Positions 17,835-63,797 of a DNA stretch of 64,000 bases are shown piece by piece. The notes under the pieces are model-generated. The model made no database searches. It had not been told where the DNA came from and worked only from the letters and a program-made list of their open reading frames with translations. This stretch comes from Mantamonas sphyraenae STR306 (Eukaryota; Protista; CRuMs): assembly GCA_026936335.1 (NCBI GenBank), contig JAPMXV010000063.1, forward strand, positions 62,001 through 126,000, given 5' to 3'. A program made the translations under genes and the position numbers. Positions within the stretch are counted from its first letter, which is position 1. Each line of letters starts with the position of its first letter.

Positions 17835-18632
17835 ATGAGTCATCCAGACAGCCACCCCGGGCCCGGTGCGTTGCCGTACCCGAGGCACGTTCAGGAGCGG
17901 CTGGGCAAGGCCAAGCGTGAGGCGGTGCCAGACCTGGCGACCATGTGGATTGTGTTTGACGACGTGGACGCACCCAGCGACTTGTTGGGTGACATTCGCA
18001 CGTACGGAGGACATGTGTTGAGCAAGTGCACGGACGAGGTGACGGCACTGGTGGTCAGCGATCCAGAAAATCCCACGGCCGCACAGGTGGCCAAACGTCA
18101 GAAGCACATGCTGGCGCTGGTGAGTTTGGACCTGGTGCGCAAGGCCGTCAACGTGGCCATGGTGACACCTCAGTTTGCGGATCAGAGTGCCAGCAGCAGC
18201 AGTGGTGGTGGTGGTGGCGCGTCTGTAGGAGGACCTGTCAAGGCGAAAAAGGCATCGAAGCGAATCCGGCCCAGCGTCGGCCGCGGTCGCGTGTTGAAGG
18301 GAACCGGACGTAGCCAGCGTGCAGGGTTGGTGTTCCCTGTGGGGCGTGTGCATCGACATTTGCGTCAGGGTCGGTTTGCAGCGCGAGTGGGTGCAGGAGC
18401 CCCCGTGTACCTCGCAGCTGTGCTGGAGTACCTCACAGCCGAGCTGTTGGAGCTGGCAGGTCAGGCATCGCGAGACCAGGGCAAGAAACGCATCACTCCA
18501 CGTCACGTCATGCTTGGAGTGCGCAACGACGAGGAACTCGACAAGCTGCTTGGAAAACACACCGTCTTTGCCCAGTCAGGCACTGTGCCACACATCCACA
18601 GCAGCCTCTGGTCTCATCCCAAGAAGAAATGA
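17835..18632 (+). CDS. Histone H2A variant with N-terminal BRCT-like domain (265 aa, intronless)
   Basis: aa ~158-260 is clear H2A: [19 protein letters not shown]...[26 protein letters not shown]...RITPRH...[10 protein letters not shown]. aa ~34-105 follows the BRCT pattern (IVF...[12 protein letters not shown]...VTALVV...[11 protein letters not shown]). Confidence 0.85.
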
Positions 18633-18688: not shown

Positions 18689-20276
18689 ATGTCCGAATCT
18701 GTGGCCTCCTCGCACGTGAGCAACAGTCGAGCTGTGTCCCATGCACGCGATGGCACGTCCGACTCTGCATCGGAAGGTGTGCGTGAGCTGCTGCCGTTCC
18801 TGCCGCCGTCTTCGGACAAGACGGCGGCGCTCCCTGCCGAATCGTACCAAGTGCAGGAAGACGCCGCCCTGGGCTGGTTCTACAAACCCCACTCCATCAC
18901 CGCCCTCCTCATCACCATTGCCATCATGATCTACTTTGGCTGGACCAGTGGCGACCACACAGAGGATGAAACTGTCAAGATGTGCGTTTGCGGAAAGAAT
19001 TGACACGTCGTCAACGATTCCGGCCCCGGCGTGTGTTTCCCCACGCCTGCCAACGGCGCACACGCAAGCGCAGACACATTGCAACGATACACACGACACT
19101 GACACACATACACCCACCCGTCCACATGTCCATGTGTCCGGTTGCATGCGTGTGCACAGCGGAATCGGCGCGGTGATTGTGGCGTTCCTCTTCTTTTCCA
19201 TGCTGCAGCTGCGCGACGGGCCGTTTGTGCGACCGCACCCAGCATTCTGGCGGGTTGTGCTGGGTGTGTCCATTGTCTACCTGATGGCCCTTGTGTTTGT
19301 GTTCTTCCAGAGCCATGAGAAGGTGCAGAAGATCTTGCACTTTTGGTATCCGGAGCTGGGGTTGCAGGATCTGCCCGACCGCTCGTACGCCGACGATTGC
19401 CGTCTGTACACACCGGGGCACGAGGACGGGCCGTTTGCCAACATCAAAGGGGTGCTGTTTGACCGGTTTGTGTTGGCACACATCGGCGGGTGGTTTGCCA
19501 AGGCGTTGATGTTCCGCGACTACTTTCTGGCCTGGACGCTGAGCTTTGTGTTTGAAATGATGGAGTACAGCTTTGAACACATGCTGAAGAACTTTAGGGA
19601 ATGCTGGTGGGATCATTTCATTGTGGACCTGCTGATTTGCAACGGTGTGGGGATCTGGCTGGGCATGCGCTTCTGTCGATTCCTGCAGATGCAGGAGTAC
19701 AACTGGACGGCCATCCGCACGACCACCAGCAGCAACAGCAGCAACGGCGGCAACCGACACAGTCTGTCGTCCACCGCACGGCATTCCGTGAACCAGCTGC
19801 TGCCGGCGCATCTGGAAACGTTTGAGTGGAACATCTTTGGGGATCCCAAACGATTCTTTGCCTTTGTCAGCGTCGTGGTGGGTGTGCTCTTTGTGGATTT
19901 GAATGCGTTCTTCCTGAAGGATGTGCTGTGGGTGCCTCCAGAGTCGCCGCTGAACCAGTACCGTCTGGTGTTGTGGTTCATCTGTGGCACGCCGGCCCTG
20001 CGTGAGTACTACCAGTATGTGACGGATCCGAGGTGCAAGAAGCTGGGCACGCAGTTGTGGGTCACCTTTGCCATCATCATTACCGAGCTGCTGGTCATTG
20101 TCAAGTTTGGCATGGGCAGGTACGACGCCACCTTTTACCACCCGCCTGCACACATTGTCTGGGGTTGGTCCATCGCCCTGGTCTCCCTTGTCGTCTGGTT
20201 CGTCTGGTTCTTTTACATCGGCAAGGGCAAGGAGAGGCGGCTTGAGCGCGCAGGTGGAGCCAAGAAGAGCAATTGA
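18689..20276 (+). CDS. Base-exchange phosphatidylserine synthase (PTDSS1/2 family), intron 18982-19159
   Basis: FYKPHSIT, DGPFVRPHPAFWR, FEMMEYSFEHMLKNFRECWWDH, LNAFFLKDVLWVPP, ALREYYQY, CKKLGTQ. Confidence 0.92.
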
Positions 20277-20457
20277 GAGGGAGACGAGGTGGAGGATCAG
20301 GAATCAGGAATGGAAGATGCCGTTGTTGCTGCTGACCACGAGGCAATCCTGCACATTGTTGCCGAGCAAGGCGTCGACACGCGTGTGCGATACCGGCAGA
20401 CTGGGCTTTTGGTGGCTTGCAAGGTGGGCATGGCTGACACGGCGCAGTTGTTGCTTA

Positions 20458-20479
20458 CAGGCTGTTCGGTTCAAATTGA
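20458..20479 (+). repeat. Left terminal inverted repeat CAGGCTGTTCGGTTCAAATTGA
   Basis: 16/22 identity to the reverse complement of 26255-26276; contains palindrome TCAA-N-TTGA. Confidence 0.8.
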
Positions 20480-20600
20480 AACTTTTGTGTGAGCTGGCGC
20501 AACGCGATTGGGCTCGGGAAAACAAAACCTACGTCCTGTGAGGAGTGGTATACACTCAGTGTTGGTTGGTTGGTTGGTTGACGGTTCTGGTGCCCCGTCC
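20458..20600 (-). ncRNA. Putative Fanzor omegaRNA scaffold (may start within the ORF 3' end; guide would come from host flank <=20457)
   Basis: Lies between the Fanzor stop and the element end, where TnpB/Fanzor omegaRNAs are encoded; short stems visible (GAGTG-gtata-CACTC, TCCT-gtg-AGGA, GAGC...CGC-aac-GCG...GCTC). Inferred, not demonstrated. Confidence 0.5.
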
Positions 20601-23600
20601 TCAGCCTGCACTCGAATTCGCCTCCAGGTTCTGTGCCTCGCCGTCCACATTCTCTGGCAGACCAATCTTGCTTCGAAACGTCCTTCCGATCTGACTCCGT
20701 TGCCAAACCTTGGTCATGCACCATATGGTGTGGCCGCGAAGGGCAGCAAACACCTTGTTGGCGATCGCCTGCGCACTCGCGAAATCCCTGTTCCGGTGCA
20801 TCTCACATCGCTCGCAGTACTTGACACGCGCAGTGCGGTCACTTCCGTGCTTGCTCTTGTGCACACTGCCACATGTGGGACATCTCAGCGTCGTATTGCA
20901 CTCGTTCACACGCACAACAATCATGTTGTGCTTGGCCAGCTCCTCCAGTTTCTTCACTCCACCACGGCCGCCCTTGAATCCGTCACCGATGCACAGCAGT
21001 GTGATGCGTCGCAGTTGCCCCTCCTCCATCAGTGTGATGCCTCGCACTTGCCCCTCCTCCAACTCCAACTGCATCTTCTCTGTCGCTCGCACCTGTGCCA
21101 GCCATTGCTCCCTCATCTTTCGGATCCGTCTTTTCTGTTCGCGTCGATCATGCGTCTTGCTGTCGCCCCTCTGGCTGCATCCCTCATTGAACTGAGCGGA
21201 TGACCCTTGTTCAGACTCCAGGATCTTGCCGCTGCACTGACTCTTCACCACCCGTCCAGCCCTGGCTGCGGTGTGCACGTCCACAAACAACCCAGATCGT
21301 TTGCTTCGCAGTTCCTGCATCTTCTCACGCACTGTCGCCGAGAGCAGAGCGTTGTCGCGCTTGATCCCTGTCCTGCGCTCCATGGCACCCAGTGACGGTG
21401 GTGAAAAACGCCAGGCGTCTGCAAAGTGAAGCACATTGTGGTTCTCAACGAGCTCCGTGCGTGGGATGTACAGAGCTGAAGGCGCATTCGAAATGCCTGG
21501 ATCCATGGCAAGGAACTGCAAGCGCGCATTTGCCTTCGAGCTCAATGGGATGAGCCTGGAGAACGAGCTCACAACACCGTGTGGTCGTCTGCTGTGCTCC
21601 ATGGACTCTGGGCACAGCTTCAGGGCAATGATCTTGTCCGCCGATTGTGGAAGCCACTTGCGGAGCAGCTTATGCACAGCCTCGGTCTGTGTTTGAGTCG
21701 CTCCGTCGCCGTCAGCCTCGTGTGGGTCCTCAACCTCCTTCCCACGCTCCCGGTGCTGGTGTGCGGCCACGTACATGGCAACCTGGCACAGAAGGATAGT
21801 CACAGCAGCAACACGTTCGATGAGGCGTCGTTGGTTGCCTTGATCCTCAGTGTGTGCGTCTTTGTCGCAGCACCTTGTCGACGTTCCTTCCAGGGCACCC
21901 TTGCCATGAATCGCAAAGTTGTACCTGGGTTTGCTGTGAGACAGAAACGGTGACGATTGTGCACGCTCAGCAAGTGGCGCATCCTCCAGGAACCCCACAT
22001 TGCCCTTCAGGAAGCGCAGCAGCTGGGCGTCATCGACTGGTTTCGTGTCTGACAAAGACGTAGCGGTTGGATTGCGGAGCAGATTCAAACACGCACGCAG
22101 AGTAGGGAACAGCGAGAGCCGTTCATCGGGAAGGATGAGATGTTCCAGGTAGTACAACCGGCGTTGGCCAGGCCCTGCCGGCACCTGCCAATGGCGAACG
22201 TGCAGAGCGTGTACCGCAGAGAAGAGGCGGATGGACAGATGCCCATCGTTGATGAAGGGTGTCTTTGAAATCCTGGGCGCGTGCATAGGGTCAAGCACGG
22301 CGAAAACGTTGAAGGCCGCGAGCAGGAGCGGGTCTGTGTACGTGCCCATGTCCTCCCCTGGGATGATGTTGTGGTCCTCATTGTGCGTGACAACACGTGC
22401 TGTGCCGTTGGCGCACCTGGATGCACACACTTGCATCGCCTTGATGGCGTCGCGCGAGAACAAGTGGCTGCTCCCGTTCTCCTCCCCGATCTTGACCATG
22501 TGCCACGCAAACGAAGCCCTCAGGGCATGCACATGTTGGCCATTTCCAGCCAGCTTTGCCCCCCTCAGCCAGCTGCCCACGGCACAGTCGCACGGGCCTC
22601 CTGCCACGCAATGGGGGCACGGAGGTGGAAAGTACTCGCCTTCTGAGGAGCACGCACCTGGACTCGATGTGACCGCACCGCACAAAATGGACCACGCAAG
22701 CATTGTGTCCTCCTTGCCTTCCCAGCAAACATCCAGCAACCCGTCACAGAGTGCGGAAAGGGCCCATCGTCCAAACAGCTTTTCCCGTTCGACCGCGAGC
22801 TGGTGATGAAGAGACTGTTTGACCGGGTACAGCTTGCGTGTGGACTGGCATTCTCTGGCCAGCTCGTACGCGCAAACATGAGAGTCGGCGCCGGAGTCGC
22901 TCGGATCGTTGCACATCAGCGCCTTGTACTTGTCCACAGAAAGCCCCACCACTTCGCGCAGCACAGTCGCGACCGCGTGCTCGCATGCCTTGCTTGTTGG
23001 TGTGTCTTGAGCATCAGTGTCCTCTTTGTCATCCACACCTTTGTGCAGGCGTTTGACAACTGCCAGGACATCACGGCGCTCGACGTCGCCGTTACTTGCC
23101 ACCACCAGGTCGACCAAGTTGTCAACGGCCTGGTTGATCAGCATGACCTTCCAGCTGGTCAGCACGAGGGCAGCTCCCCGCTGGCACAGGGCTGTGAAGG
23201 CTCCACTGGGGAGACAACGCAGGTCGATGCCACACCTCGCTTCCTCGGGTGCCAGCTCATCCAGATACTCCGCAACGACTCCACCGCTCGGTTGTCTTCT
23301 CAACACGAGGTCAGCTGTCACAGAGATGTACTTGGGGAACTCGCTGAGCTTCGGGGTTGCCTCGCATGTGATCTCCATCTCAGACGGCGGCTTCAGGTAG
23401 ATTCGGCCTACCTTGAGCTGCAGGCAAGCCGACAGCACGTTCTCGAGGTCTTTGCTTGGTTCCAGCAGACCACACTCGAGCAAATCACACTGGATGGCAA
23501 CGATTAGCCCAAAGGCGTGCGCCATCGCATCCAACTCTTCCACGGATCGTGCGTTGATGAGCGCAGCATTTCGCAGTTTCTCGAGGCTGCCGAGCTCCAC

Positions 23601-25772
23601 CACACACGAAGACGATGCCAGACGCTCAGTATGGTCCGAGTCCAGCTTCGGTGTCGAGAAGCCCATGAATACTTCCCACTCGTCGTCCGAGGGGTCCGGC
23701 AGAATTGTGTTGATCACTGCGTCCAGTCGCGAGGCACGGTGGCCATCGTCATCGTCGTCTTGCTTTTTGTACACGTAGTCGATGGCATTGCTGGCCATTG
23801 TGTCCCAAAAGACCGCCTCGTCAGAGCTGGGTGGCGTTGGACCAAGGATGGCGGCCAGCTGTTGATTGTCGCCCACGAACACGTCCATGGAGGCATCAAC
23901 ACCCGCCTTCTTCATCGCCTTGGTCATCTTCGTGTTGAGCTTGTCGCGCACGGCTTCCTCAAGCACGCCACGCATCTTGCTGAGCCGCTCGCGCTTCCCA
24001 TTGTCGGCATGCTTCTTGCACAGGGCTTCCCACTTCTTGACCGAGATCATGTTGTTGTACATGGAAGCAGGGTTGGTGTACTCGATCTCGTCTGTGCCCC
24101 GCGCCGCTGCCACAAGGCCCTCGACACCCTCTGCCGCCACGTCAACCGTCACCGGGTACGCGTATCTGGATCCGATGTTCTCCAACGGCACATGTGATGC
24201 ATCGTGTCGCTTCATCGCCTCCCAACGCGTCCGAATCTGTTCCTTCAGGCCGTCCAGCGCGCCACGCAGGGTCTGTTCGCCTTCCAGCTGGCGCGCCTGC
24301 TCCACCACCTCTCCTGGTGGGAGCAGACGTGCCTTTCGCAATGTGTCATGGTCTGTCACGGCATAATCATTGGCGTAGGCCGCAAACAGGGATCCAATGT
24401 GTCCGCCAACACCCAGATCGACTTGGCCCAGCACATGAGGACCAGGCAGGCCACTCCAATCCAGCTCAGCTTTCGTTCCACCCGTATCGAACACGGCGTC
24501 CCATGCGTGCAATGACGTGAGGGTGTTGATCGTGCGGTCGTCGAAGCCCATTTGACACAGGTGGAACTTCACGGCAGCAAGATACTTCTGGGCGTGCTCC
24601 TGCACCAGGTCCAGGTGCTTGGAAGCAGGTTGTGTGCCCCGTGTGCCTTGCAGTAGATGTGCCACGGACTTGTCGTCCCTCAGGATCGGTTGGTAGATGT
24701 ACGTCAGCAAGCTCCCGCCGCCCGCCAGCAACTCATTCAGGCTCCCGGCATCCAGCCGCAGCATGTTCCGGCGTGGGGCTCGCACGGCTGCCTCAATGTC
24801 GCTCGACAGCAGCAACGCCGCCACGAGTGAAACCAACCGGCCGACGTGCGGCTCGACGATGGCGAAGCCAAGGCGAGGGTGCAGGAGAACAACTGGGTGC
24901 TCGGCGACGTTGTATCCCCAATCACTATCATGCAGGGTGATCACAAAGGTGACGTGTTGAAGTTGGTTGTACAAACGCACCAGCTCATTCTTGACGTCGT
25001 CAGCCAGACATGCACCGGGGTTCTCATTCACCTTGTCGTTGCCACACTCGTACACATCGTGCTGGGAACACAGGTGTTTTACAGCATGATAGACAGCAAC
25101 CTGCGCCTGTCCAGTCAAACTCAACGTATGCCCCTGTGCTAGTGTCTTCAAGTCGGCCTTCTCCCGTTTCAACTTGCGCAACGTCTTGCTCATGGTCGCC
25201 ACATGCGCCAGCGTGTTCTCCATGCGCCGCAGGTGCGTGCCGAAGCTCACTGACTGGGCCTGCTCATCGAGAAACTCGGGCTTCAGATCGCAGACGAGCA
25301 CGTACCTGACATTCGCATTCCGAAGGTCCACCCGCAGTTCTGTGGCCGCTTTCTCAGCCTCGACACATCGTGTAACCAGTTCACGCACCTTGTCTTCGGG
25401 TACGTCTGACACGCGGGCCGCCTCCTCCACGACCGTGTGGACCACGGAGCTAACGTCAACCAGCACTTTCACGTCGCCTTCCAGCTGAGTCATGCCTTGC
25501 TCAAATTCGATACCGTAGGTTGCCAAGATATCTTGCTGTCGCCTCGCCTTGCCATTGCCTCCTTGTCGCCCGTGGGCCAATTGGACCGACTTGGTCCGAT
25601 TGAGTCGGTTTCCGTTTTTTGCCCTCCTGCGCTTTCCTTGGACGTCTTGCGACCGGGCTGTACTCCTCATCCTCACTGTCCTCCTCATCATCGCTGTACT
25701 CCTCATCCTCGCGGTACTCCTCATAGTCGCCGTAAACCAATTCCGTGTCCATAGCCGCCTGAGCGGCTGCAA
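20601..25772 (-). CDS. Giant Fanzor/TnpB-family nuclease (>=1,723 aa) with N-terminal FEN1/XPG-like PIN domain; true start uncertain
   Basis: RuvC-I FLAMDPG (D1424), CIGDG, VVRVNECNTT (E1624), zinc finger CPTC...CERC, RuvC-III HRNRDFASAQAI (D1663). N-terminal motifs VLVD106, VLVCD162, LADD258-259, ITLHD282SD284, LLLSSD325. Confidence 0.85.
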   Translation of the reverse strand: MQPLRRLWTRNWFTATMRSTARMRSTAMMRRTVRMRSTARSQDVQGKRRRAKNGNRLNRTKSVQLAHGRQGGNGKARRQQDILATYGIEFEQGMTQLEGDVKVLVDVSSVVHTVVEEAARVSDVPEDKVRELVTRCVEAEKAATELRVDLRNANVRYVLVCDLKPEFLDEQAQSVSFGTHLRRMENTLAHVATMSKTLRKLKREKADLKTLAQGHTLSLTGQAQVAVYHAVKHLCSQHDVYECGNDKVNENPGACLADDVKNELVRLYNQLQHVTFVITLHDSDWGYNVAEHPVVLLHPRLGFAIVEPHVGRLVSLVAALLLSSDIEAAVRAPRRNMLRLDAGSLNELLAGGGSLLTYIYQPILRDDKSVAHLLQGTRGTQPASKHLDLVQEHAQKYLAAVKFHLCQMGFDDRTINTLTSLHAWDAVFDTGGTKAELDWSGLPGPHVLGQVDLGVGGHIGSLFAAYANDYAVTDHDTLRKARLLPPGEVVEQARQLEGEQTLRGALDGLKEQIRTRWEAMKRHDASHVPLENIGSRYAYPVTVDVAAEGVEGLVAAARGTDEIEYTNPASMYNNMISVKKWEALCKKHADNGKRERLSKMRGVLEEAVRDKLNTKMTKAMKKAGVDASMDVFVGDNQQLAAILGPTPPSSDEAVFWDTMASNAIDYVYKKQDDDDDGHRASRLDAVINTILPDPSDDEWEVFMGFSTPKLDSDHTERLASSSCVVELGSLEKLRNAALINARSVEELDAMAHAFGLIVAIQCDLLECGLLEPSKDLENVLSACLQLKVGRIYLKPPSEMEITCEATPKLSEFPKYISVTADLVLRRQPSGGVVAEYLDELAPEEARCGIDLRCLPSGAFTALCQRGAALVLTSWKVMLINQAVDNLVDLVVASNGDVERRDVLAVVKRLHKGVDDKEDTDAQDTPTSKACEHAVATVLREVVGLSVDKYKALMCNDPSDSGADSHVCAYELARECQSTRKLYPVKQSLHHQLAVEREKLFGRWALSALCDGLLDVCWEGKEDTMLAWSILCGAVTSSPGACSSEGEYFPPPCPHCVAGGPCDCAVGSWLRGAKLAGNGQHVHALRASFAWHMVKIGEENGSSHLFSRDAIKAMQVCASRCANGTARVVTHNEDHNIIPGEDMGTYTDPLLLAAFNVFAVLDPMHAPRISKTPFINDGHLSIRLFSAVHALHVRHWQVPAGPGQRRLYYLEHLILPDERLSLFPTLRACLNLLRNPTATSLSDTKPVDDAQLLRFLKGNVGFLEDAPLAERAQSSPFLSHSKPRYNFAIHGKGALEGTSTRCCDKDAHTEDQGNQRRLIERVAAVTILLCQVAMYVAAHQHRERGKEVEDPHEADGDGATQTQTEAVHKLLRKWLPQSADKIIALKLCPESMEHSRRPHGVVSSFSRLIPLSSKANARLQFLAMDPGISNAPSALYIPRTELVENHNVLHFADAWRFSPPSLGAMERRTGIKRDNALLSATVREKMQELRSKRSGLFVDVHTAARAGRVVKSQCSGKILESEQGSSAQFNEGCSQRGDSKTHDRREQKRRIRKMREQWLAQVRATEKMQLELEEGQVRGITLMEEGQLRRITLLCIGDGFKGGRGGVKKLEELAKHNMIVVRVNECNTTLRCPTCGSVHKSKHGSDRTARVKYCERCEMHRNRDFASAQAIANKVFAALRGHTIWCMTKVWQRSQIGRTFRSKIGLPENVDGEAQNLEANSSAG

Positions 25773-25858
25773 ACATCCTGACGCTTCCTACACCTCCCTC
25801 CACCTTCAAACTTCGGCGTGGCCCTTGCACGTCCACCACAGTCTCCCCGGGCGCTTAC

Positions 25859-26068
25859 ACCAAGCACACACACATCACAGAATCGTTCTTGCAGTCCCAC
25901 GCCATTGTCACAATGAACAGAAGCACAGACGTGGCGGCGCGAACGCTTCATTCCGGACCGCTCGGAAACCGAAAGGCCGTCCTCACCGTCGTTGTCAAGG
26001 GCGATGTTGCTGTGGCTACGTTTCCGTTTGTCATTATGCTTTGAATGCTTTGCGTGGTGTTCGCTCAT
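25859..26068 (-). CDS. Probable first exon of the transposon gene (70 aa: basic NLS-like stretch, CxxxxC...CxxC)
   Basis: ATG at 26068, MSEHHAKHSKHNDKRKRS...CASVHC...FCDVCVLG, then GTAAGC donor at 25858; TTTGCAG acceptor at 25767 joins in phase 0 to the long ORF. Confidence 0.5.
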
Positions 26069-26254
26069 TGTGCGCGTTTTCTTGCCCCCTGTGGCGCAGC
26101 TTGTTTGGCGTTCGGTCCTCCATCTGCAGGCCATACGGGCCAAATACAACGAGCACAGCCCCATGACACACAAATGCAGGCGCCATGCCAAAGGTGGAAT
26201 GAACAAACTTCAGAAAGGGGATTTTCATTGGCAACGGGGTTTGCGGCGCGAGGC

Positions 26255-26276
26255 TCAACTTGACCCGAATTCACTG
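26255..26276 (-). repeat. Right terminal inverted repeat (reverse complement CAGTGAATTCGGGTCAAGTTGA)
   Basis: 16/22 identity to the left TIR; same CAG terminus and TCAA-N-TTGA palindrome. Confidence 0.8.
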
Positions 26277-26974
26277 TAGTCTCGGCGCAGATGTCGACGC
26301 CACCGACTCTGTGCAACGCACCAGTCTCCACATTGCTGCACAACGTGGTCACATGGACTGCGTGCGCATGTTGTTGCAGTACGGGGCATCCACACACTCT
26401 GTAGATGCCCAAGGGCAGACGCCGCTGCTGAGAGCCGTCGGCTGGCAGCAAGTGGCCGTGGTGCTCGCCCTTCTGCTGTGTGGTGACGCACAGAAGGACG
26501 CATGCAATGCATACGGGGTGAATGCATTGCTGCTGGAGGATGACTTTGTCGATCACGCCCTCCTGGTGGAGCAACAGAGCCTCGAACGGTGGTGGGATCC
26601 CTTCCGGGACCAGCTGCACGGGTTGCCCATCCATTGGAGCCCACAACGGCATTGGATGATGGACAAGGAGATCGACATGCGTGTGGAGATGGCACTGATG
26701 CTGTGTGAGGCCAGTGACGAGTGTGATGAGCGAGTGCAACTTCGGCTCGCCTCGTTTTGCGCCTGGACATGAAGATATCACTGATCATGCATTGTCAAAA
26801 TGACAATCTGGTTTTGTTCACTCATCCCCATGGCATGTGTGCTGTGTCCTCGTCCACGTGAGTGGTGCTGCGACGCTGCGAGGGTGCCACGTCGGCAGGG
26901 AATTCTGAGCTCTGCCTGGCCACGAAACCAAACGCACTGGCGTCCCACACACACACACACACACTCTCTCTCTC

Positions 26975-61138: not shown

Positions 61139-63797
61139 CGTTGGGGTGTTTGCGCAGACGCGATCTCGCCAGCGCTTCCACGGCACGGTCGTTGCTCACG
61201 ACGGCAGAAAACTTGGTGGCAAAGTTCTTGAGAACCCGGAGGCTCTCTGGCGTTGGATTGTCCACCAGCACCATGAGTTTGTCCATGGCCTGCTTGCTGA
61301 GGCCCACGTGGGCCATGGGTTTGCCCGCAGGTGCACACAAGGCCTTGAGGAAGGAGGCATACGTGCTGGGCGACGGCTCGATGTCCATGTGATGGATCAT
61401 GTCGTCCATGATGCGGCAGGCAAACGCAATGTTGTGTTCGTTGGCACTCTGCACCAGCAGCGTCTCGAGCATGATTCGGTCTGGAATCACCCCATACTTG
61501 CTCTTGGCCACATCGTAGGTGCGCATGGCCTGCGGCAGTTTGTGCTGGTCCACCAAGTGCAGGATGGCCACGTTGAAATATGCCGCCATGGTGCCTCTGC
61601 TGCCCAGGGTGGGCGACGAGTGCATCCGTTCAATCGTCTCCAGCATGTTGTCAATGTCCCCACGTTTGGCAAAGTAGTTGATGAGCAGGTCAAAGGTGAT
61701 GCTGTTGGGCTGCACGCCGTTGCGTTCCATGTCCCGCAATGCCTTGTGCAGCAAATCCGTGCGTTCCTCGCGCACACACGCGTCCAGGACGCTCGTGTAC
61801 CCGATGTCGTTCATCACCATTCCGTTCAACTTGGCCTCTTCCAACAGTTCAAACGCTTGGTCCACCTGTCCGCCCTTGGCACATGCGTTGATCAACGTGC
61901 CATAGCTCACGTGGTCTGGCCGCTCCAATTGCTCAAACACCTCCCGCGCCCGTTTGTACTCGCCCGACTGGGCGCATACGTTCATGAGCGAGTTGAGAAA
62001 CACGTCGTTTGCCGCCACTCCCTGCCGTTGCATGTCCTCGTAGAAGCCCATCGCCGCCTTGACATCCTCACGCTGCGCACACGCGCTCATCAACGCCACA
62101 TAAGTCGCCACCGTCGGCCTCGGCGCCGGAGCCGTGCCTCCCACCAGCGACGGAGATGATGATGATGACGACGACGATGACGATGATGACGATGACGATG
62201 CGCCACGGTTGCCCTTGGTGCCGCTATTGCGTCGTCTTCGACGTCGACCTCGTGGCCGCGATGCATGCGAGCCCTGAGTCATGCGGTGATAGATCGCGGT
62301 GGCGTCGCGGAGGCGCCCGTGCTTGCCGTACACGTGGATGAGTGAGTTGAGACACACCTCGTTGAGGGCAACGCCCATGCGGGTGGCTTCGTCCATGAGC
62401 GCCTCGGCCTCGTTGATGTCGCCGATCTTTGCGGCGCGTGCGAGGAGCAAGCCAAAGGTGACGACGTCCTTTTGCACGCCGTGCACACGTGTCATGTCCT
62501 GTGCCAAGCGCAGGGCACTGTCAAAGTCGTTGTTGAGCAGGAAGCCGTTGATCATGATGTTGAAGGAAAACTGGTTGGGCTTGAGGCCGAGCATGCGCAG
62601 TTCGTCGAGCAGGGCCATGCCTTCCACCATCCGTTGCGTCTTTGCATACACGTCCAACACCGAGTTGAAACAGATGACGTCGGGTCGCACGCCTTCCACT
62701 TGCATCTGTGTGTACAGATCCAGGGCCTGATCGTACTCACCCATGCGTGCGCACGTGTTGATCATCGCCGTGTACGTCCGTGTGTTGACAGATCGCCCGT
62801 GGCGTGCGGTGGCACTGTGTGGCGACGTGCGCAGTTCCTCAAACAGGTCCCACGCCAGATCCAAGTCGTTGACACGTGCACACAACGAGATGAGAATGGT
62901 GTAGGTGATTTCGTCCACCTCGTCCACCTTGTCCTTCATCGTGGCAAACAACGCCAACGCCTGCTTCTTTGTCTCTTTGATCCGTGCGGCCGTCTCGCCA
63001 CTGTCGCCCGTGTGCGCGTGCCGTTCCAAGTGTTTCAGGCACGCGTTGATGAGCGTCGTGTACGTAAACTGATTCGGCGTCAACTCTGCCTCCCGCATCG
63101 CCTCGTACAGTTGCATCGACCGCTTGAGGTCGCCGCGTTTGGCCAGCCCGTTGATCAACGCCGTGTAGGTGACAATGTTCGGTGTGATGCCTGCTCCCTG
63201 CAGCGTGTGCAACACCTCAAAGGCACGATTCACGTCGCCGCTCCGCACACACGCCGTGATCAGATGGTTGTATGTGGGCAGACGCACCTCCACGCCTGCC
63301 TCTTGCATGTGCGCAAACACGGAAAACGCCCGTTCCAGCTGTTTGTGTCGTCCGCACACTGCAATCAGGGCGTTGTACGCTTCCGGCGACACGTTGACCC
63401 CAGCGTTGCCTGCCTTGGCAAACAACTCAAACGCACGACTCAACTGATTGCGTTTGGTCGCTGCCACAATCAGGTTGGCGTACAACACCTCATCCTTGGT
63501 CTCCTGGGCCACGGAATCGTCGCCAGCTGCCCTTGCGTCACTCTCGTCCACCTCTATCTGCTGTATGCCAGCCTGTGCCGCCATACCACACCGCTGCACA
63601 ATGGCACCATGGATTCCATGTGCTGTGCCACTCACCTGTGCACACGTGCGACTGCCCATGGCCAGGTGCAGCGGGTGCATTTTGAGACGGATTTCCGCGG
63701 CCGTGGTCTGGCTGCGTTCTTGCCACGTGCACAGGCGGCGAGGGTGCGTGACACGTTCCACCTGCGCATGCACACGTCGCACCACCGCCACATGCAC
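61131..63797 (-). CDS. P-type pentatricopeptide-repeat protein, probably mitochondrial; start uncertain
   Basis: About 15 35-aa repeats, e.g. PNIVTYTALINGLAKRGDLKRSMQLYEAMREAELTPNQFTYTTLINAC. Confidence 0.92.
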   Translation of the reverse strand: MHVAVVRRVHAQVERVTHPRRLCTWQERSQTTAAEIRLKMHPLHLAMGSRTCAQVSGTAHGIHGAIVQRCGMAAQAGIQQIEVDESDARAAGDDSVAQETKDEVLYANLIVAATKRNQLSRAFELFAKAGNAGVNVSPEAYNALIAVCGRHKQLERAFSVFAHMQEAGVEVRLPTYNHLITACVRSGDVNRAFEVLHTLQGAGITPNIVTYTALINGLAKRGDLKRSMQLYEAMREAELTPNQFTYTTLINACLKHLERHAHTGDSGETAARIKETKKQALALFATMKDKVDEVDEITYTILISLCARVNDLDLAWDLFEELRTSPHSATARHGRSVNTRTYTAMINTCARMGEYDQALDLYTQMQVEGVRPDVICFNSVLDVYAKTQRMVEGMALLDELRMLGLKPNQFSFNIMINGFLLNNDFDSALRLAQDMTRVHGVQKDVVTFGLLLARAAKIGDINEAEALMDEATRMGVALNEVCLNSLIHVYGKHGRLRDATAIYHRMTQGSHASRPRGRRRRRRNSGTKGNRGASSSSSSSSSSSSSSSPSLVGGTAPAPRPTVATYVALMSACAQREDVKAAMGFYEDMQRQGVAANDVFLNSLMNVCAQSGEYKRAREVFEQLERPDHVSYGTLINACAKGGQVDQAFELLEEAKLNGMVMNDIGYTSVLDACVREERTDLLHKALRDMERNGVQPNSITFDLLINYFAKRGDIDNMLETIERMHSSPTLGSRGTMAAYFNVAILHLVDQHKLPQAMRTYDVAKSKYGVIPDRIMLETLLVQSANEHNIAFACRIMDDMIHHMDIEPSPSTYASFLKALCAPAGKPMAHVGLSKQAMDKLMVLVDNPTPESLRVLKNFATKFSAVVSNDRAVEALARSRLRKHPNDE

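Follow-up and report, generated by a model that had tools for sequence, protein, structure and literature searches.

A giant Fanzor-type gene with a predicted 5' nuclease domain in a probable IS630/Tc1/mariner-type transposon of Mantamonas sphyraenae

The stretch of DNA analysed here (hereafter the window) comprises 64,000 nucleotides of contig JAPMXV010000063.1 of Mantamonas sphyraenae STR306, positions 62,001 to 126,000, and contains an ankyrin-repeat gene split by a 5,819-bp element (20458-26276, termini CAG...CTG). This element is probably an IS630/Tc1/mariner-type DNA transposon, non-autonomous and recently mobile, and we hold the explanation developed below, taken overall, to be likely. 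Its giant gene is predicted to encode a protein in which a C-terminal Fanzor half is joined to an N-terminal domain modelled as a 5' nuclease.

The borders of the element are sharp. TA is duplicated on either side, and the two termini are identical at 16 of 22 positions, with a TCAA-N-TTGA palindrome common to both; among random pairs drawn from the window, a match of at least 16/22 has a chance of 5e-5. A TA duplication together with inverted repeats is the signature of DDE enzymes. Rechecking of the coordinates bore out the TA...TA borders, CAG/CTG ends and repeats that the original prediction, made from the letters alone, had described, and its further claim that IS630/Tc1/mariner-type ends here carry a Fanzor cargo agrees with the ends, the TA and the Fanzor motifs. 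The host gene and the ends are laid out as follows.

20310-20456, plus strand: 5' half of the host ankyrin-repeat gene, 49 codons from the ATG, in frame with the 3' half
20456-20457, no strand: left TA target-site duplication
20458-20479, no strand: terminal inverted repeat at the 3' end of the giant gene (end comparison, family-wide pattern)
26255-26276, no strand: terminal inverted repeat at the 5' end of the giant gene (end comparison, family-wide pattern)
26277-26278, no strand: right TA target-site duplication, expected to form part of the target-adjacent motif, a role suggested by PMC13565253
26279-26772, plus strand: 3' half of the host ankyrin-repeat gene (Pfam Ank_4, E 1e-16)

The element belongs to a family. 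DNA, protein and end-pattern searches covered 78 contigs (25,061,354 bases) of the genome of this diploid, mostly intronless organism, whose assembly represents one haplotype, a further 6 Mb of associated contigs not being part of it (PMC10492846). Sixteen elements with both ends checked were found at unrelated loci, their inverted repeats matching at 13-20 of 22 positions. TA flanks both ends in 14 of them, the other two having one end mutated, and outside the TA there is only a weak preference for A. Thirteen of the 16 carry the same giant gene: besides the window copy, there are four with 98-99% nucleotide identity to it, a pair at 81%, another pair at 70%, and a more distant group of four with 35-50% protein identity. 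The remaining three (L041-L043) have the same ends with a far more distant giant gene. Synonymous divergence of the closest copies is about 0.03, and movement has therefore been recent; the siblings at 98-99% identity and an empty allele in reads uphold the recent insertion that had been proposed. The original prediction had looked to a genome search for copies, miniature inverted-repeat transposable elements (MITEs) and an autonomous partner. The copies were there, but no MITE family was seen, every two-ended element examined keeping the giant frame, and no intact partner with these ends was found.

Some copies show irregularities at their ends. At L002:7331-7337, TA-CTG-TA directly follows the element, a single case that resembles a 3-nt excision footprint or an end duplication. 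At L009:7267-7335, a second, internal terminal repeat lies about 70 nt inside the 3' end and replaces part of the candidate omegaRNA described below. Solo 3' ends and a family fragment, without the giant gene, occur at L040:8655, L044:1132 and L039:8170-8400 (C69, C34 and C43); the solo 3' ends are possible stand-alone sources of guides.

Removal of the element with one TA, the halves being joined in a script to check the frame, restores a stop-free ankyrin frame of 213 codons from the ATG at 20310 to 26772, reading LLL-S-LGADVDATD, just as anticipated. A contiguous host gene also exists in the reads: three of the four runs from a single study gave a read contig joining 20455 to 26279, which places an uninterrupted ankyrin gene on another allele. 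Since this joint, the sole one seen, occurs in genomic runs too, it represents an allele, and splicing of the element out of host mRNA is ruled out. Two things named in advance as telling against the original prediction were thus not found, as many copies carry these ends and the ankyrin gene is contiguous on the empty allele. The empty site sought in reads was accordingly present and in frame, but with AG in place of the expected TA (LLL-G-LGAD); a second single-nucleotide polymorphism lies at 20400. The other haplotype may truly be without TA here, in which case it would lack the expected target motif, or one-base homopolymer assembly errors may affect both junctions, the insertion having then gone into a TA one base leftward. 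The four runs are probably the assembly's own samples and hence not independent.

The window element has no DD34E/D transposase, as had been stated at the outset, and the reason is likely to be found among its relatives. Two relatives, L035 and L036, share its ends and giant gene but are 1.0-1.3 kb longer, and their extra DNA, upstream and co-oriented, codes for an IS630/Tc1-like transposase (E 2e-14 against an intact DDE_3 protein of the same genome, the L036 query being its first exon only). Both copies are broken: the L036 gene, which has a probable GT-AG intron of about 95 nt, carries a frameshift and is truncated at the third catalytic position, and L035 has lost its catalytic half. Because these same-ended relatives keep a broken transposase upstream of the giant gene, the window element is, by sequence comparison, a deletion derivative of a transposase-plus-Fanzor element, as PMC3627910 describes for PUl-1 and PUl-4. 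Mobilisation in trans by a mariner-like partner, as first suggested, is thus strengthened by the broken IS630-like genes, but no intact transposase with these ends was found.

The assembly holds 17 intact DDE_3 genes, of which five sit 6-7 kb upstream of other TnpB-domain frames of 1,536-1,638 codons. These pairs (G000:C2:226-234k, C44:200-208k, C44:317-326k, C11:271-279k and C57:104-112k) are probable autonomous giant-Fanzor elements with other ends. Further TnpB-domain frames of 1,780-1,861 codons, together with frames of 1,793 and 2,087 codons, occur on G000 C8, C10, C25, C29, C30, C31, C45 and C58; these were not picked up by a profile of the N-terminal domain of the window family. At L006:7321-8384 (G000:C44:17466-18530), about 45 bp lie between the start of an intact IS630 transposase gene (339 aa) and the end of a giant-Fanzor element. 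This gene is one of a distinct family with at least nine copies, 95-100% identical, whose matches all begin at the same (T)GTA, which suggests a TGTA target preference. As a partner acting in trans this family was considered and not shown: it starts right at the shared TA and bears no resemblance to the repeats described here.

The giant gene and its parts, with residues numbered throughout on the 1,723-aa frame of the window copy, are as follows.

20601-26068, minus strand: giant Fanzor gene, 1,822-1,824 codons in the siblings; open for 1,728 codons (20601-25787) in the window copy
20784-21509, minus strand: RuvC and zinc finger, with D1424 (DPG), E1624, a C4 zinc finger at 1631-1656 and D1663 (PF07282, E 8e-7)
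21510-22322, minus strand: probable WED/REC region, with an NDG motif at 1175
22323-24425, minus strand: middle of the protein, aa 450-1150, about 700 residues, predicted mostly helical
24429-25550, minus strand: FEN1/EXO1/XRN-type 5' nuclease (PIN-like) domain, predicted from an AlphaFold model, Foldseek, VIA and Atlas
25590-26068, minus strand: N-terminal basic, cysteine-rich, acidic segment, broken in the window copy by two indels

In the four closest siblings the gene is a single uninterrupted frame, its ATG corresponding to window position 26068, and in twelve relatives a frame of 1,816-1,977 codons is preserved along with both active sites. Relative to the siblings, the window copy has one extra nucleotide at about 25845-25848 and a loss of 2-5 nt at about 25590. 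The extra base is lacking wholly in the read contigs of two runs and partly in the others, and no splice joint was seen in the reads; the first exon and intron that had been supposed upstream are rejected, as the sibling frames are continuous and the window copy merely has two small indels. Either the window copy was mis-polished in assembly, or it is newly broken, a case of copy-specific decay. The study of M. sphyraenae lists one poly-A TruSeq library among four runs (PMC10492846). One run (X4) has TruSeq adapter ends and, unlike the genomic runs, almost no depth over the 5' terminal 100 bases of the element; because of these features and the listed library we take it to be the poly-A RNA, which would mean that the family is transcribed along the whole frame; the label attached to the run reads DNA, followed by a question mark. 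By codon comparison the giant protein is under purifying selection, the ratio of nonsynonymous to synonymous substitution rates (dN/dS) being about 0.2 in both nuclease domains.

Judged by its motifs, the C-terminal half is a Fanzor with an intact D-E-D triad. The signature motifs of Fanzors, including the TDG of Fanzor1, were defined in PMC10711439, and the D-X-TT-C4 zinc finger-RD arrangement in PMC3627910. In the present family, D1424-P-G (RuvC-I) is invariant, as is R-D1663 (RuvC-III) after the C4 zinc finger. A glycine occupies the canonical position of the RuvC-II glutamate, and E1624, shortly before the first cysteine at 1631, is invariant in six family representatives. Language-model (Atlas) features of aa 1130-1700 reach 0.96-0.97 to eukaryotic and giant-virus clusters with TnpB domains. 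Further upstream, in the probable WED/REC region (dN/dS 0.09-0.25), the NDG at 1175 resembles the Fanzor1 TDG motif, its N being invariant. The element contains no serine recombinase (IS607).

The N-terminal domain gave no Pfam hit, and its assignment comes from structure prediction. A model of aa 75-450 built with AlphaFold from seven family members (predicted local distance difference test 64) suggests, with moderate confidence, a FEN1/EXO1/XRN-type 5' nuclease with PIN core, helical arch and H2TH domain. The top 50 Foldseek matches are all 5' nucleases, led by EXO1 (E 2e-4), and a wide structural search with VIA gave Xrn1 (Z 10.6), EXO1 (Z 10.5) and T4 RNase H (Z 10.2), with root-mean-square deviations of 4.5-5.1 over 214-290 residues; two Atlas searches also point to 5' nucleases. 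Residues D106, D162, D258, D282, D284 and D325, together with R183, are invariant in 12 proteins, and 246 is D or E. The six aspartates fall where the FEN-like pattern (PMC5499597) expects them, an equivalence by motif position rather than by superposed coordinates. The domain has a dN/dS of 0.17-0.24. In L041-L043 the protein has the DPG, the shifted glutamate and the RD motif, and it weakly matches the N-terminal nuclease over the second half of that domain. In these 6.7-kb elements, of which L041 is frameshifted, only the second half of the 5'-nuclease motif set lies in the long frame; short frames upstream may be further exons.

A transposase or recombinase fold had been sought in aa 340-1400, with the middle of the protein suspected of a role in mobility. 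No such fold emerged, the region up to residue 450 being part of the predicted 5' nuclease. The middle (dN/dS mostly 0.24-0.43) has no match in Pfam, the PDB or fold searches, the last made from a low-confidence model, and it is not detectably conserved in L041-L043, which use the same ends. A hidden DDE enzyme or recombinase there was set aside on these searches, the model being too poor to exclude a fold, and the suspected role in mobility is not supported.

At its 3' end the element may encode the RNA partner of the Fanzor. An omegaRNA with a flank-derived guide would be expected from what is known of the family (PMC13565253), and two segments are candidates for these parts.

20458-20640, minus strand: candidate omegaRNA scaffold, with an AACC repeat
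20436-20455, minus strand: predicted guide segment, consisting of host flank reached by read-through beyond the element's 3' end, by analogy with Fanzor architecture (PMC13565253)

The stretch from stop codon to element end is 142-169 nt long in the family and conserved in blocks across 9 copies, and synonymous divergence falls in the C-terminal codons; the candidate omegaRNA perhaps overlaps the last codons. In a fold computed from the alignment, the terminal repeat is paired with the end of the frame, and one small hairpin is retained that shows compensatory change in two cases. The flanks, and with them the candidate guides, differ among copies. Conservation of the 3' region could alternatively be due to exchange of 3' ends between subfamilies.

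What Fanzors do in eukaryotic transposons has been deduced mainly by way of bacterial TnpB. We propose that new insertions are very probably made in trans by an IS630-type transposase, either a cognate copy missing from the haploid assembly or a member of one of the intact families. The Fanzor half, bound to an omegaRNA composed of the element 3' end and host flank, would then quite probably cut the TA site where it is still empty, on the homologue or the sister chromatid. With rather less assurance, the chances being slightly under even, the fused 5' nuclease may trim flaps or 5' ends, either at the break or in the course of repair, and thereby favour homologous repair from the filled copy, which would restore the element or spread it (restorative homing). 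Precedents for the first two steps exist in established families, and the third is our own proposal. Taken together they would describe a natural RNA-guided "cut and resect" homing system with two nucleases that has radiated in a deep-branching eukaryote, an idea we put forward only tentatively. An empty allele without TA is as expected under this idea if only target-resistant alleles stay empty.

Several observations weigh against this account. Filled junctions of the ankyrin locus are absent from the listed read contigs, and close to its 5' end the window copy carries a frameshift. The aa 545-1710 model (1,166 residues) is poor (predicted template modelling score 0.33) and leaves WED/REC poorly defined, and the folding energy of the 3' region is no better than that of shuffled sequences, with z-scores that are not significant. 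As for the enzyme acting in trans, none of the 17 intact DDE_3 genes lies inside ends of this type, judged by coordinates in an assembly of one haplotype, and the intact transposases share only 29-36% identity with the cognate remnant.

The fold by itself is compatible with either DNA or RNA as substrate. The 5' nuclease might act on RNA, trimming the transcript to omegaRNA or degrading host or competitor RNA in the manner of XRN or vhs, while the element and the Fanzor keep the same roles. This is a real but less likely possibility: Xrn1 is in effect tied with EXO1 as the best structural match (Z 10.6 against 10.5), and the Atlas comparison brings up virion host shutoff and FAM120A/asteroid clusters, at 0.87-0.90, whereas Foldseek places EXO1 and T4 RNase H first and the top Atlas matches include poxvirus G5, a nuclease of double-strand-break repair (PMC5499597). 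It is very unlikely that the giant protein mobilises the element itself, through an integrase hidden in the middle or with its two nucleases serving as excision and insertion enzymes. The assembly has no intact cognate transposase despite recent movement, the giant frame is retained in all two-ended elements examined with no MITE family beside them, and some 700 residues are without an assigned role. However, a conventional IS630 remnant persists in same-ended relatives, the ends themselves bear the DDE signature, and the middle is mostly helical by prediction and not shared with L041-L043; moreover, 6 Mb of contigs lie outside the one-haplotype assembly (PMC10492846), and Spu-1 is likewise without an identified transposase (PMC10432273). 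That the giant gene is inert cargo, or the insertion an assembly artefact, we regard as extremely unlikely. The two indels of the window copy and the filled junctions missing from the listed read contigs would fit such a view, but twelve relatives keep long frames with both active sites and dN/dS is well below 1, and the flanks are contiguous in the empty allele with the element set between exact TA duplications.

Known systems offer close parallels for parts of this arrangement. The mariner/Tc1-associated Fanzor1 elements PUl-1, PUl-4 and PGv-1 (Bao and Jurka 2013, PMC3627910) likewise have a TA duplication and inverted repeats, with a Fanzor that either follows a mariner-like transposase or, in non-autonomous derivatives, stands alone, and share the D-X-TT-C4 zinc finger-RD motif. 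The lack of a transposase in the element is by itself ordinary, non-autonomous mariner-type Fanzor elements being known. Spu-1 of Spizellomyces punctatus, with its protein SpuFz1 (PMC10432273), is also alike in having a single Fanzor frame between inverted repeats, many conserved copies and no transposase inside. In M. sphyraenae, by comparison, same-ended copies still hold the remains of a broken transposase, short "ghost" loci were not seen as a family, the 3' non-coding stretch is 142-169 nt rather than about 80, and upstream conservation is limited to TA, with the weak preference for A around it, instead of CATA. The N-terminal domain resembles the FEN1/XPG/EXO1/XRN superfamily (PMC5499597), which includes T4 RNase H and poxvirus G5, in predicted fold, acidic pattern, arch arginine and an H2TH-like SSD motif. 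It departs from that superfamily in its 9-15% identity, in its fusion to a Fanzor inside a transposon, and in one of the two acidic residues before helix 4, which is out of its usual place and may be replaced by acidic 246.

Size and fusion set the protein apart from known Fanzor1. Fanzors have a mean length of 620 aa (PMC10530073), the largest reaching about 800 (PMC10711439); the present protein has about 1,820 aa, with a complete 5' nuclease domain predicted in the same frame and no sequence-level match to catalogued Fanzors. Word-index searches and viral and metagenome scans returned no homologues outside this genome, in collections that cover protists poorly, and a full HMMER search of aa 545-1710, a query that does not include the 5' nuclease domain, against 1.84 billion representatives returned only one 73-aa zinc-finger fragment (E 3.6e-5). 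No natural fusion of a Fanzor with a 5' nuclease was found in the literature searched, which did not extend to the supplementary domain tables of PMC10530073 or to Repbase; nor did a Fanzor of this size turn up there.

Two frames precede the ankyrin gene on the plus strand of the window, as read from their translations only. One (17835-18632, 265 aa) is Histone H2A-like with a long N-terminal extension, and the other (18936-20276) resembles phosphatidylserine synthase and stops 34 bp ahead of the ankyrin ATG.

The giant gene extends the known size range of Fanzors more than twofold, to about three times the usual size. Pairs of a guided endonuclease and a 5' nuclease have been built artificially by genome engineers to steer repair; a natural, selected fusion of the two would, if confirmed, show how these activities are coupled, and the pairing may assist the element in being copied back into empty sites. 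In M. sphyraenae a compact diploid genome contains insertions that are recent and in part heterozygous, alongside empty alleles, and the elements occur in decayed, non-autonomous and probably autonomous forms, making homing testable from existing reads and from culture.

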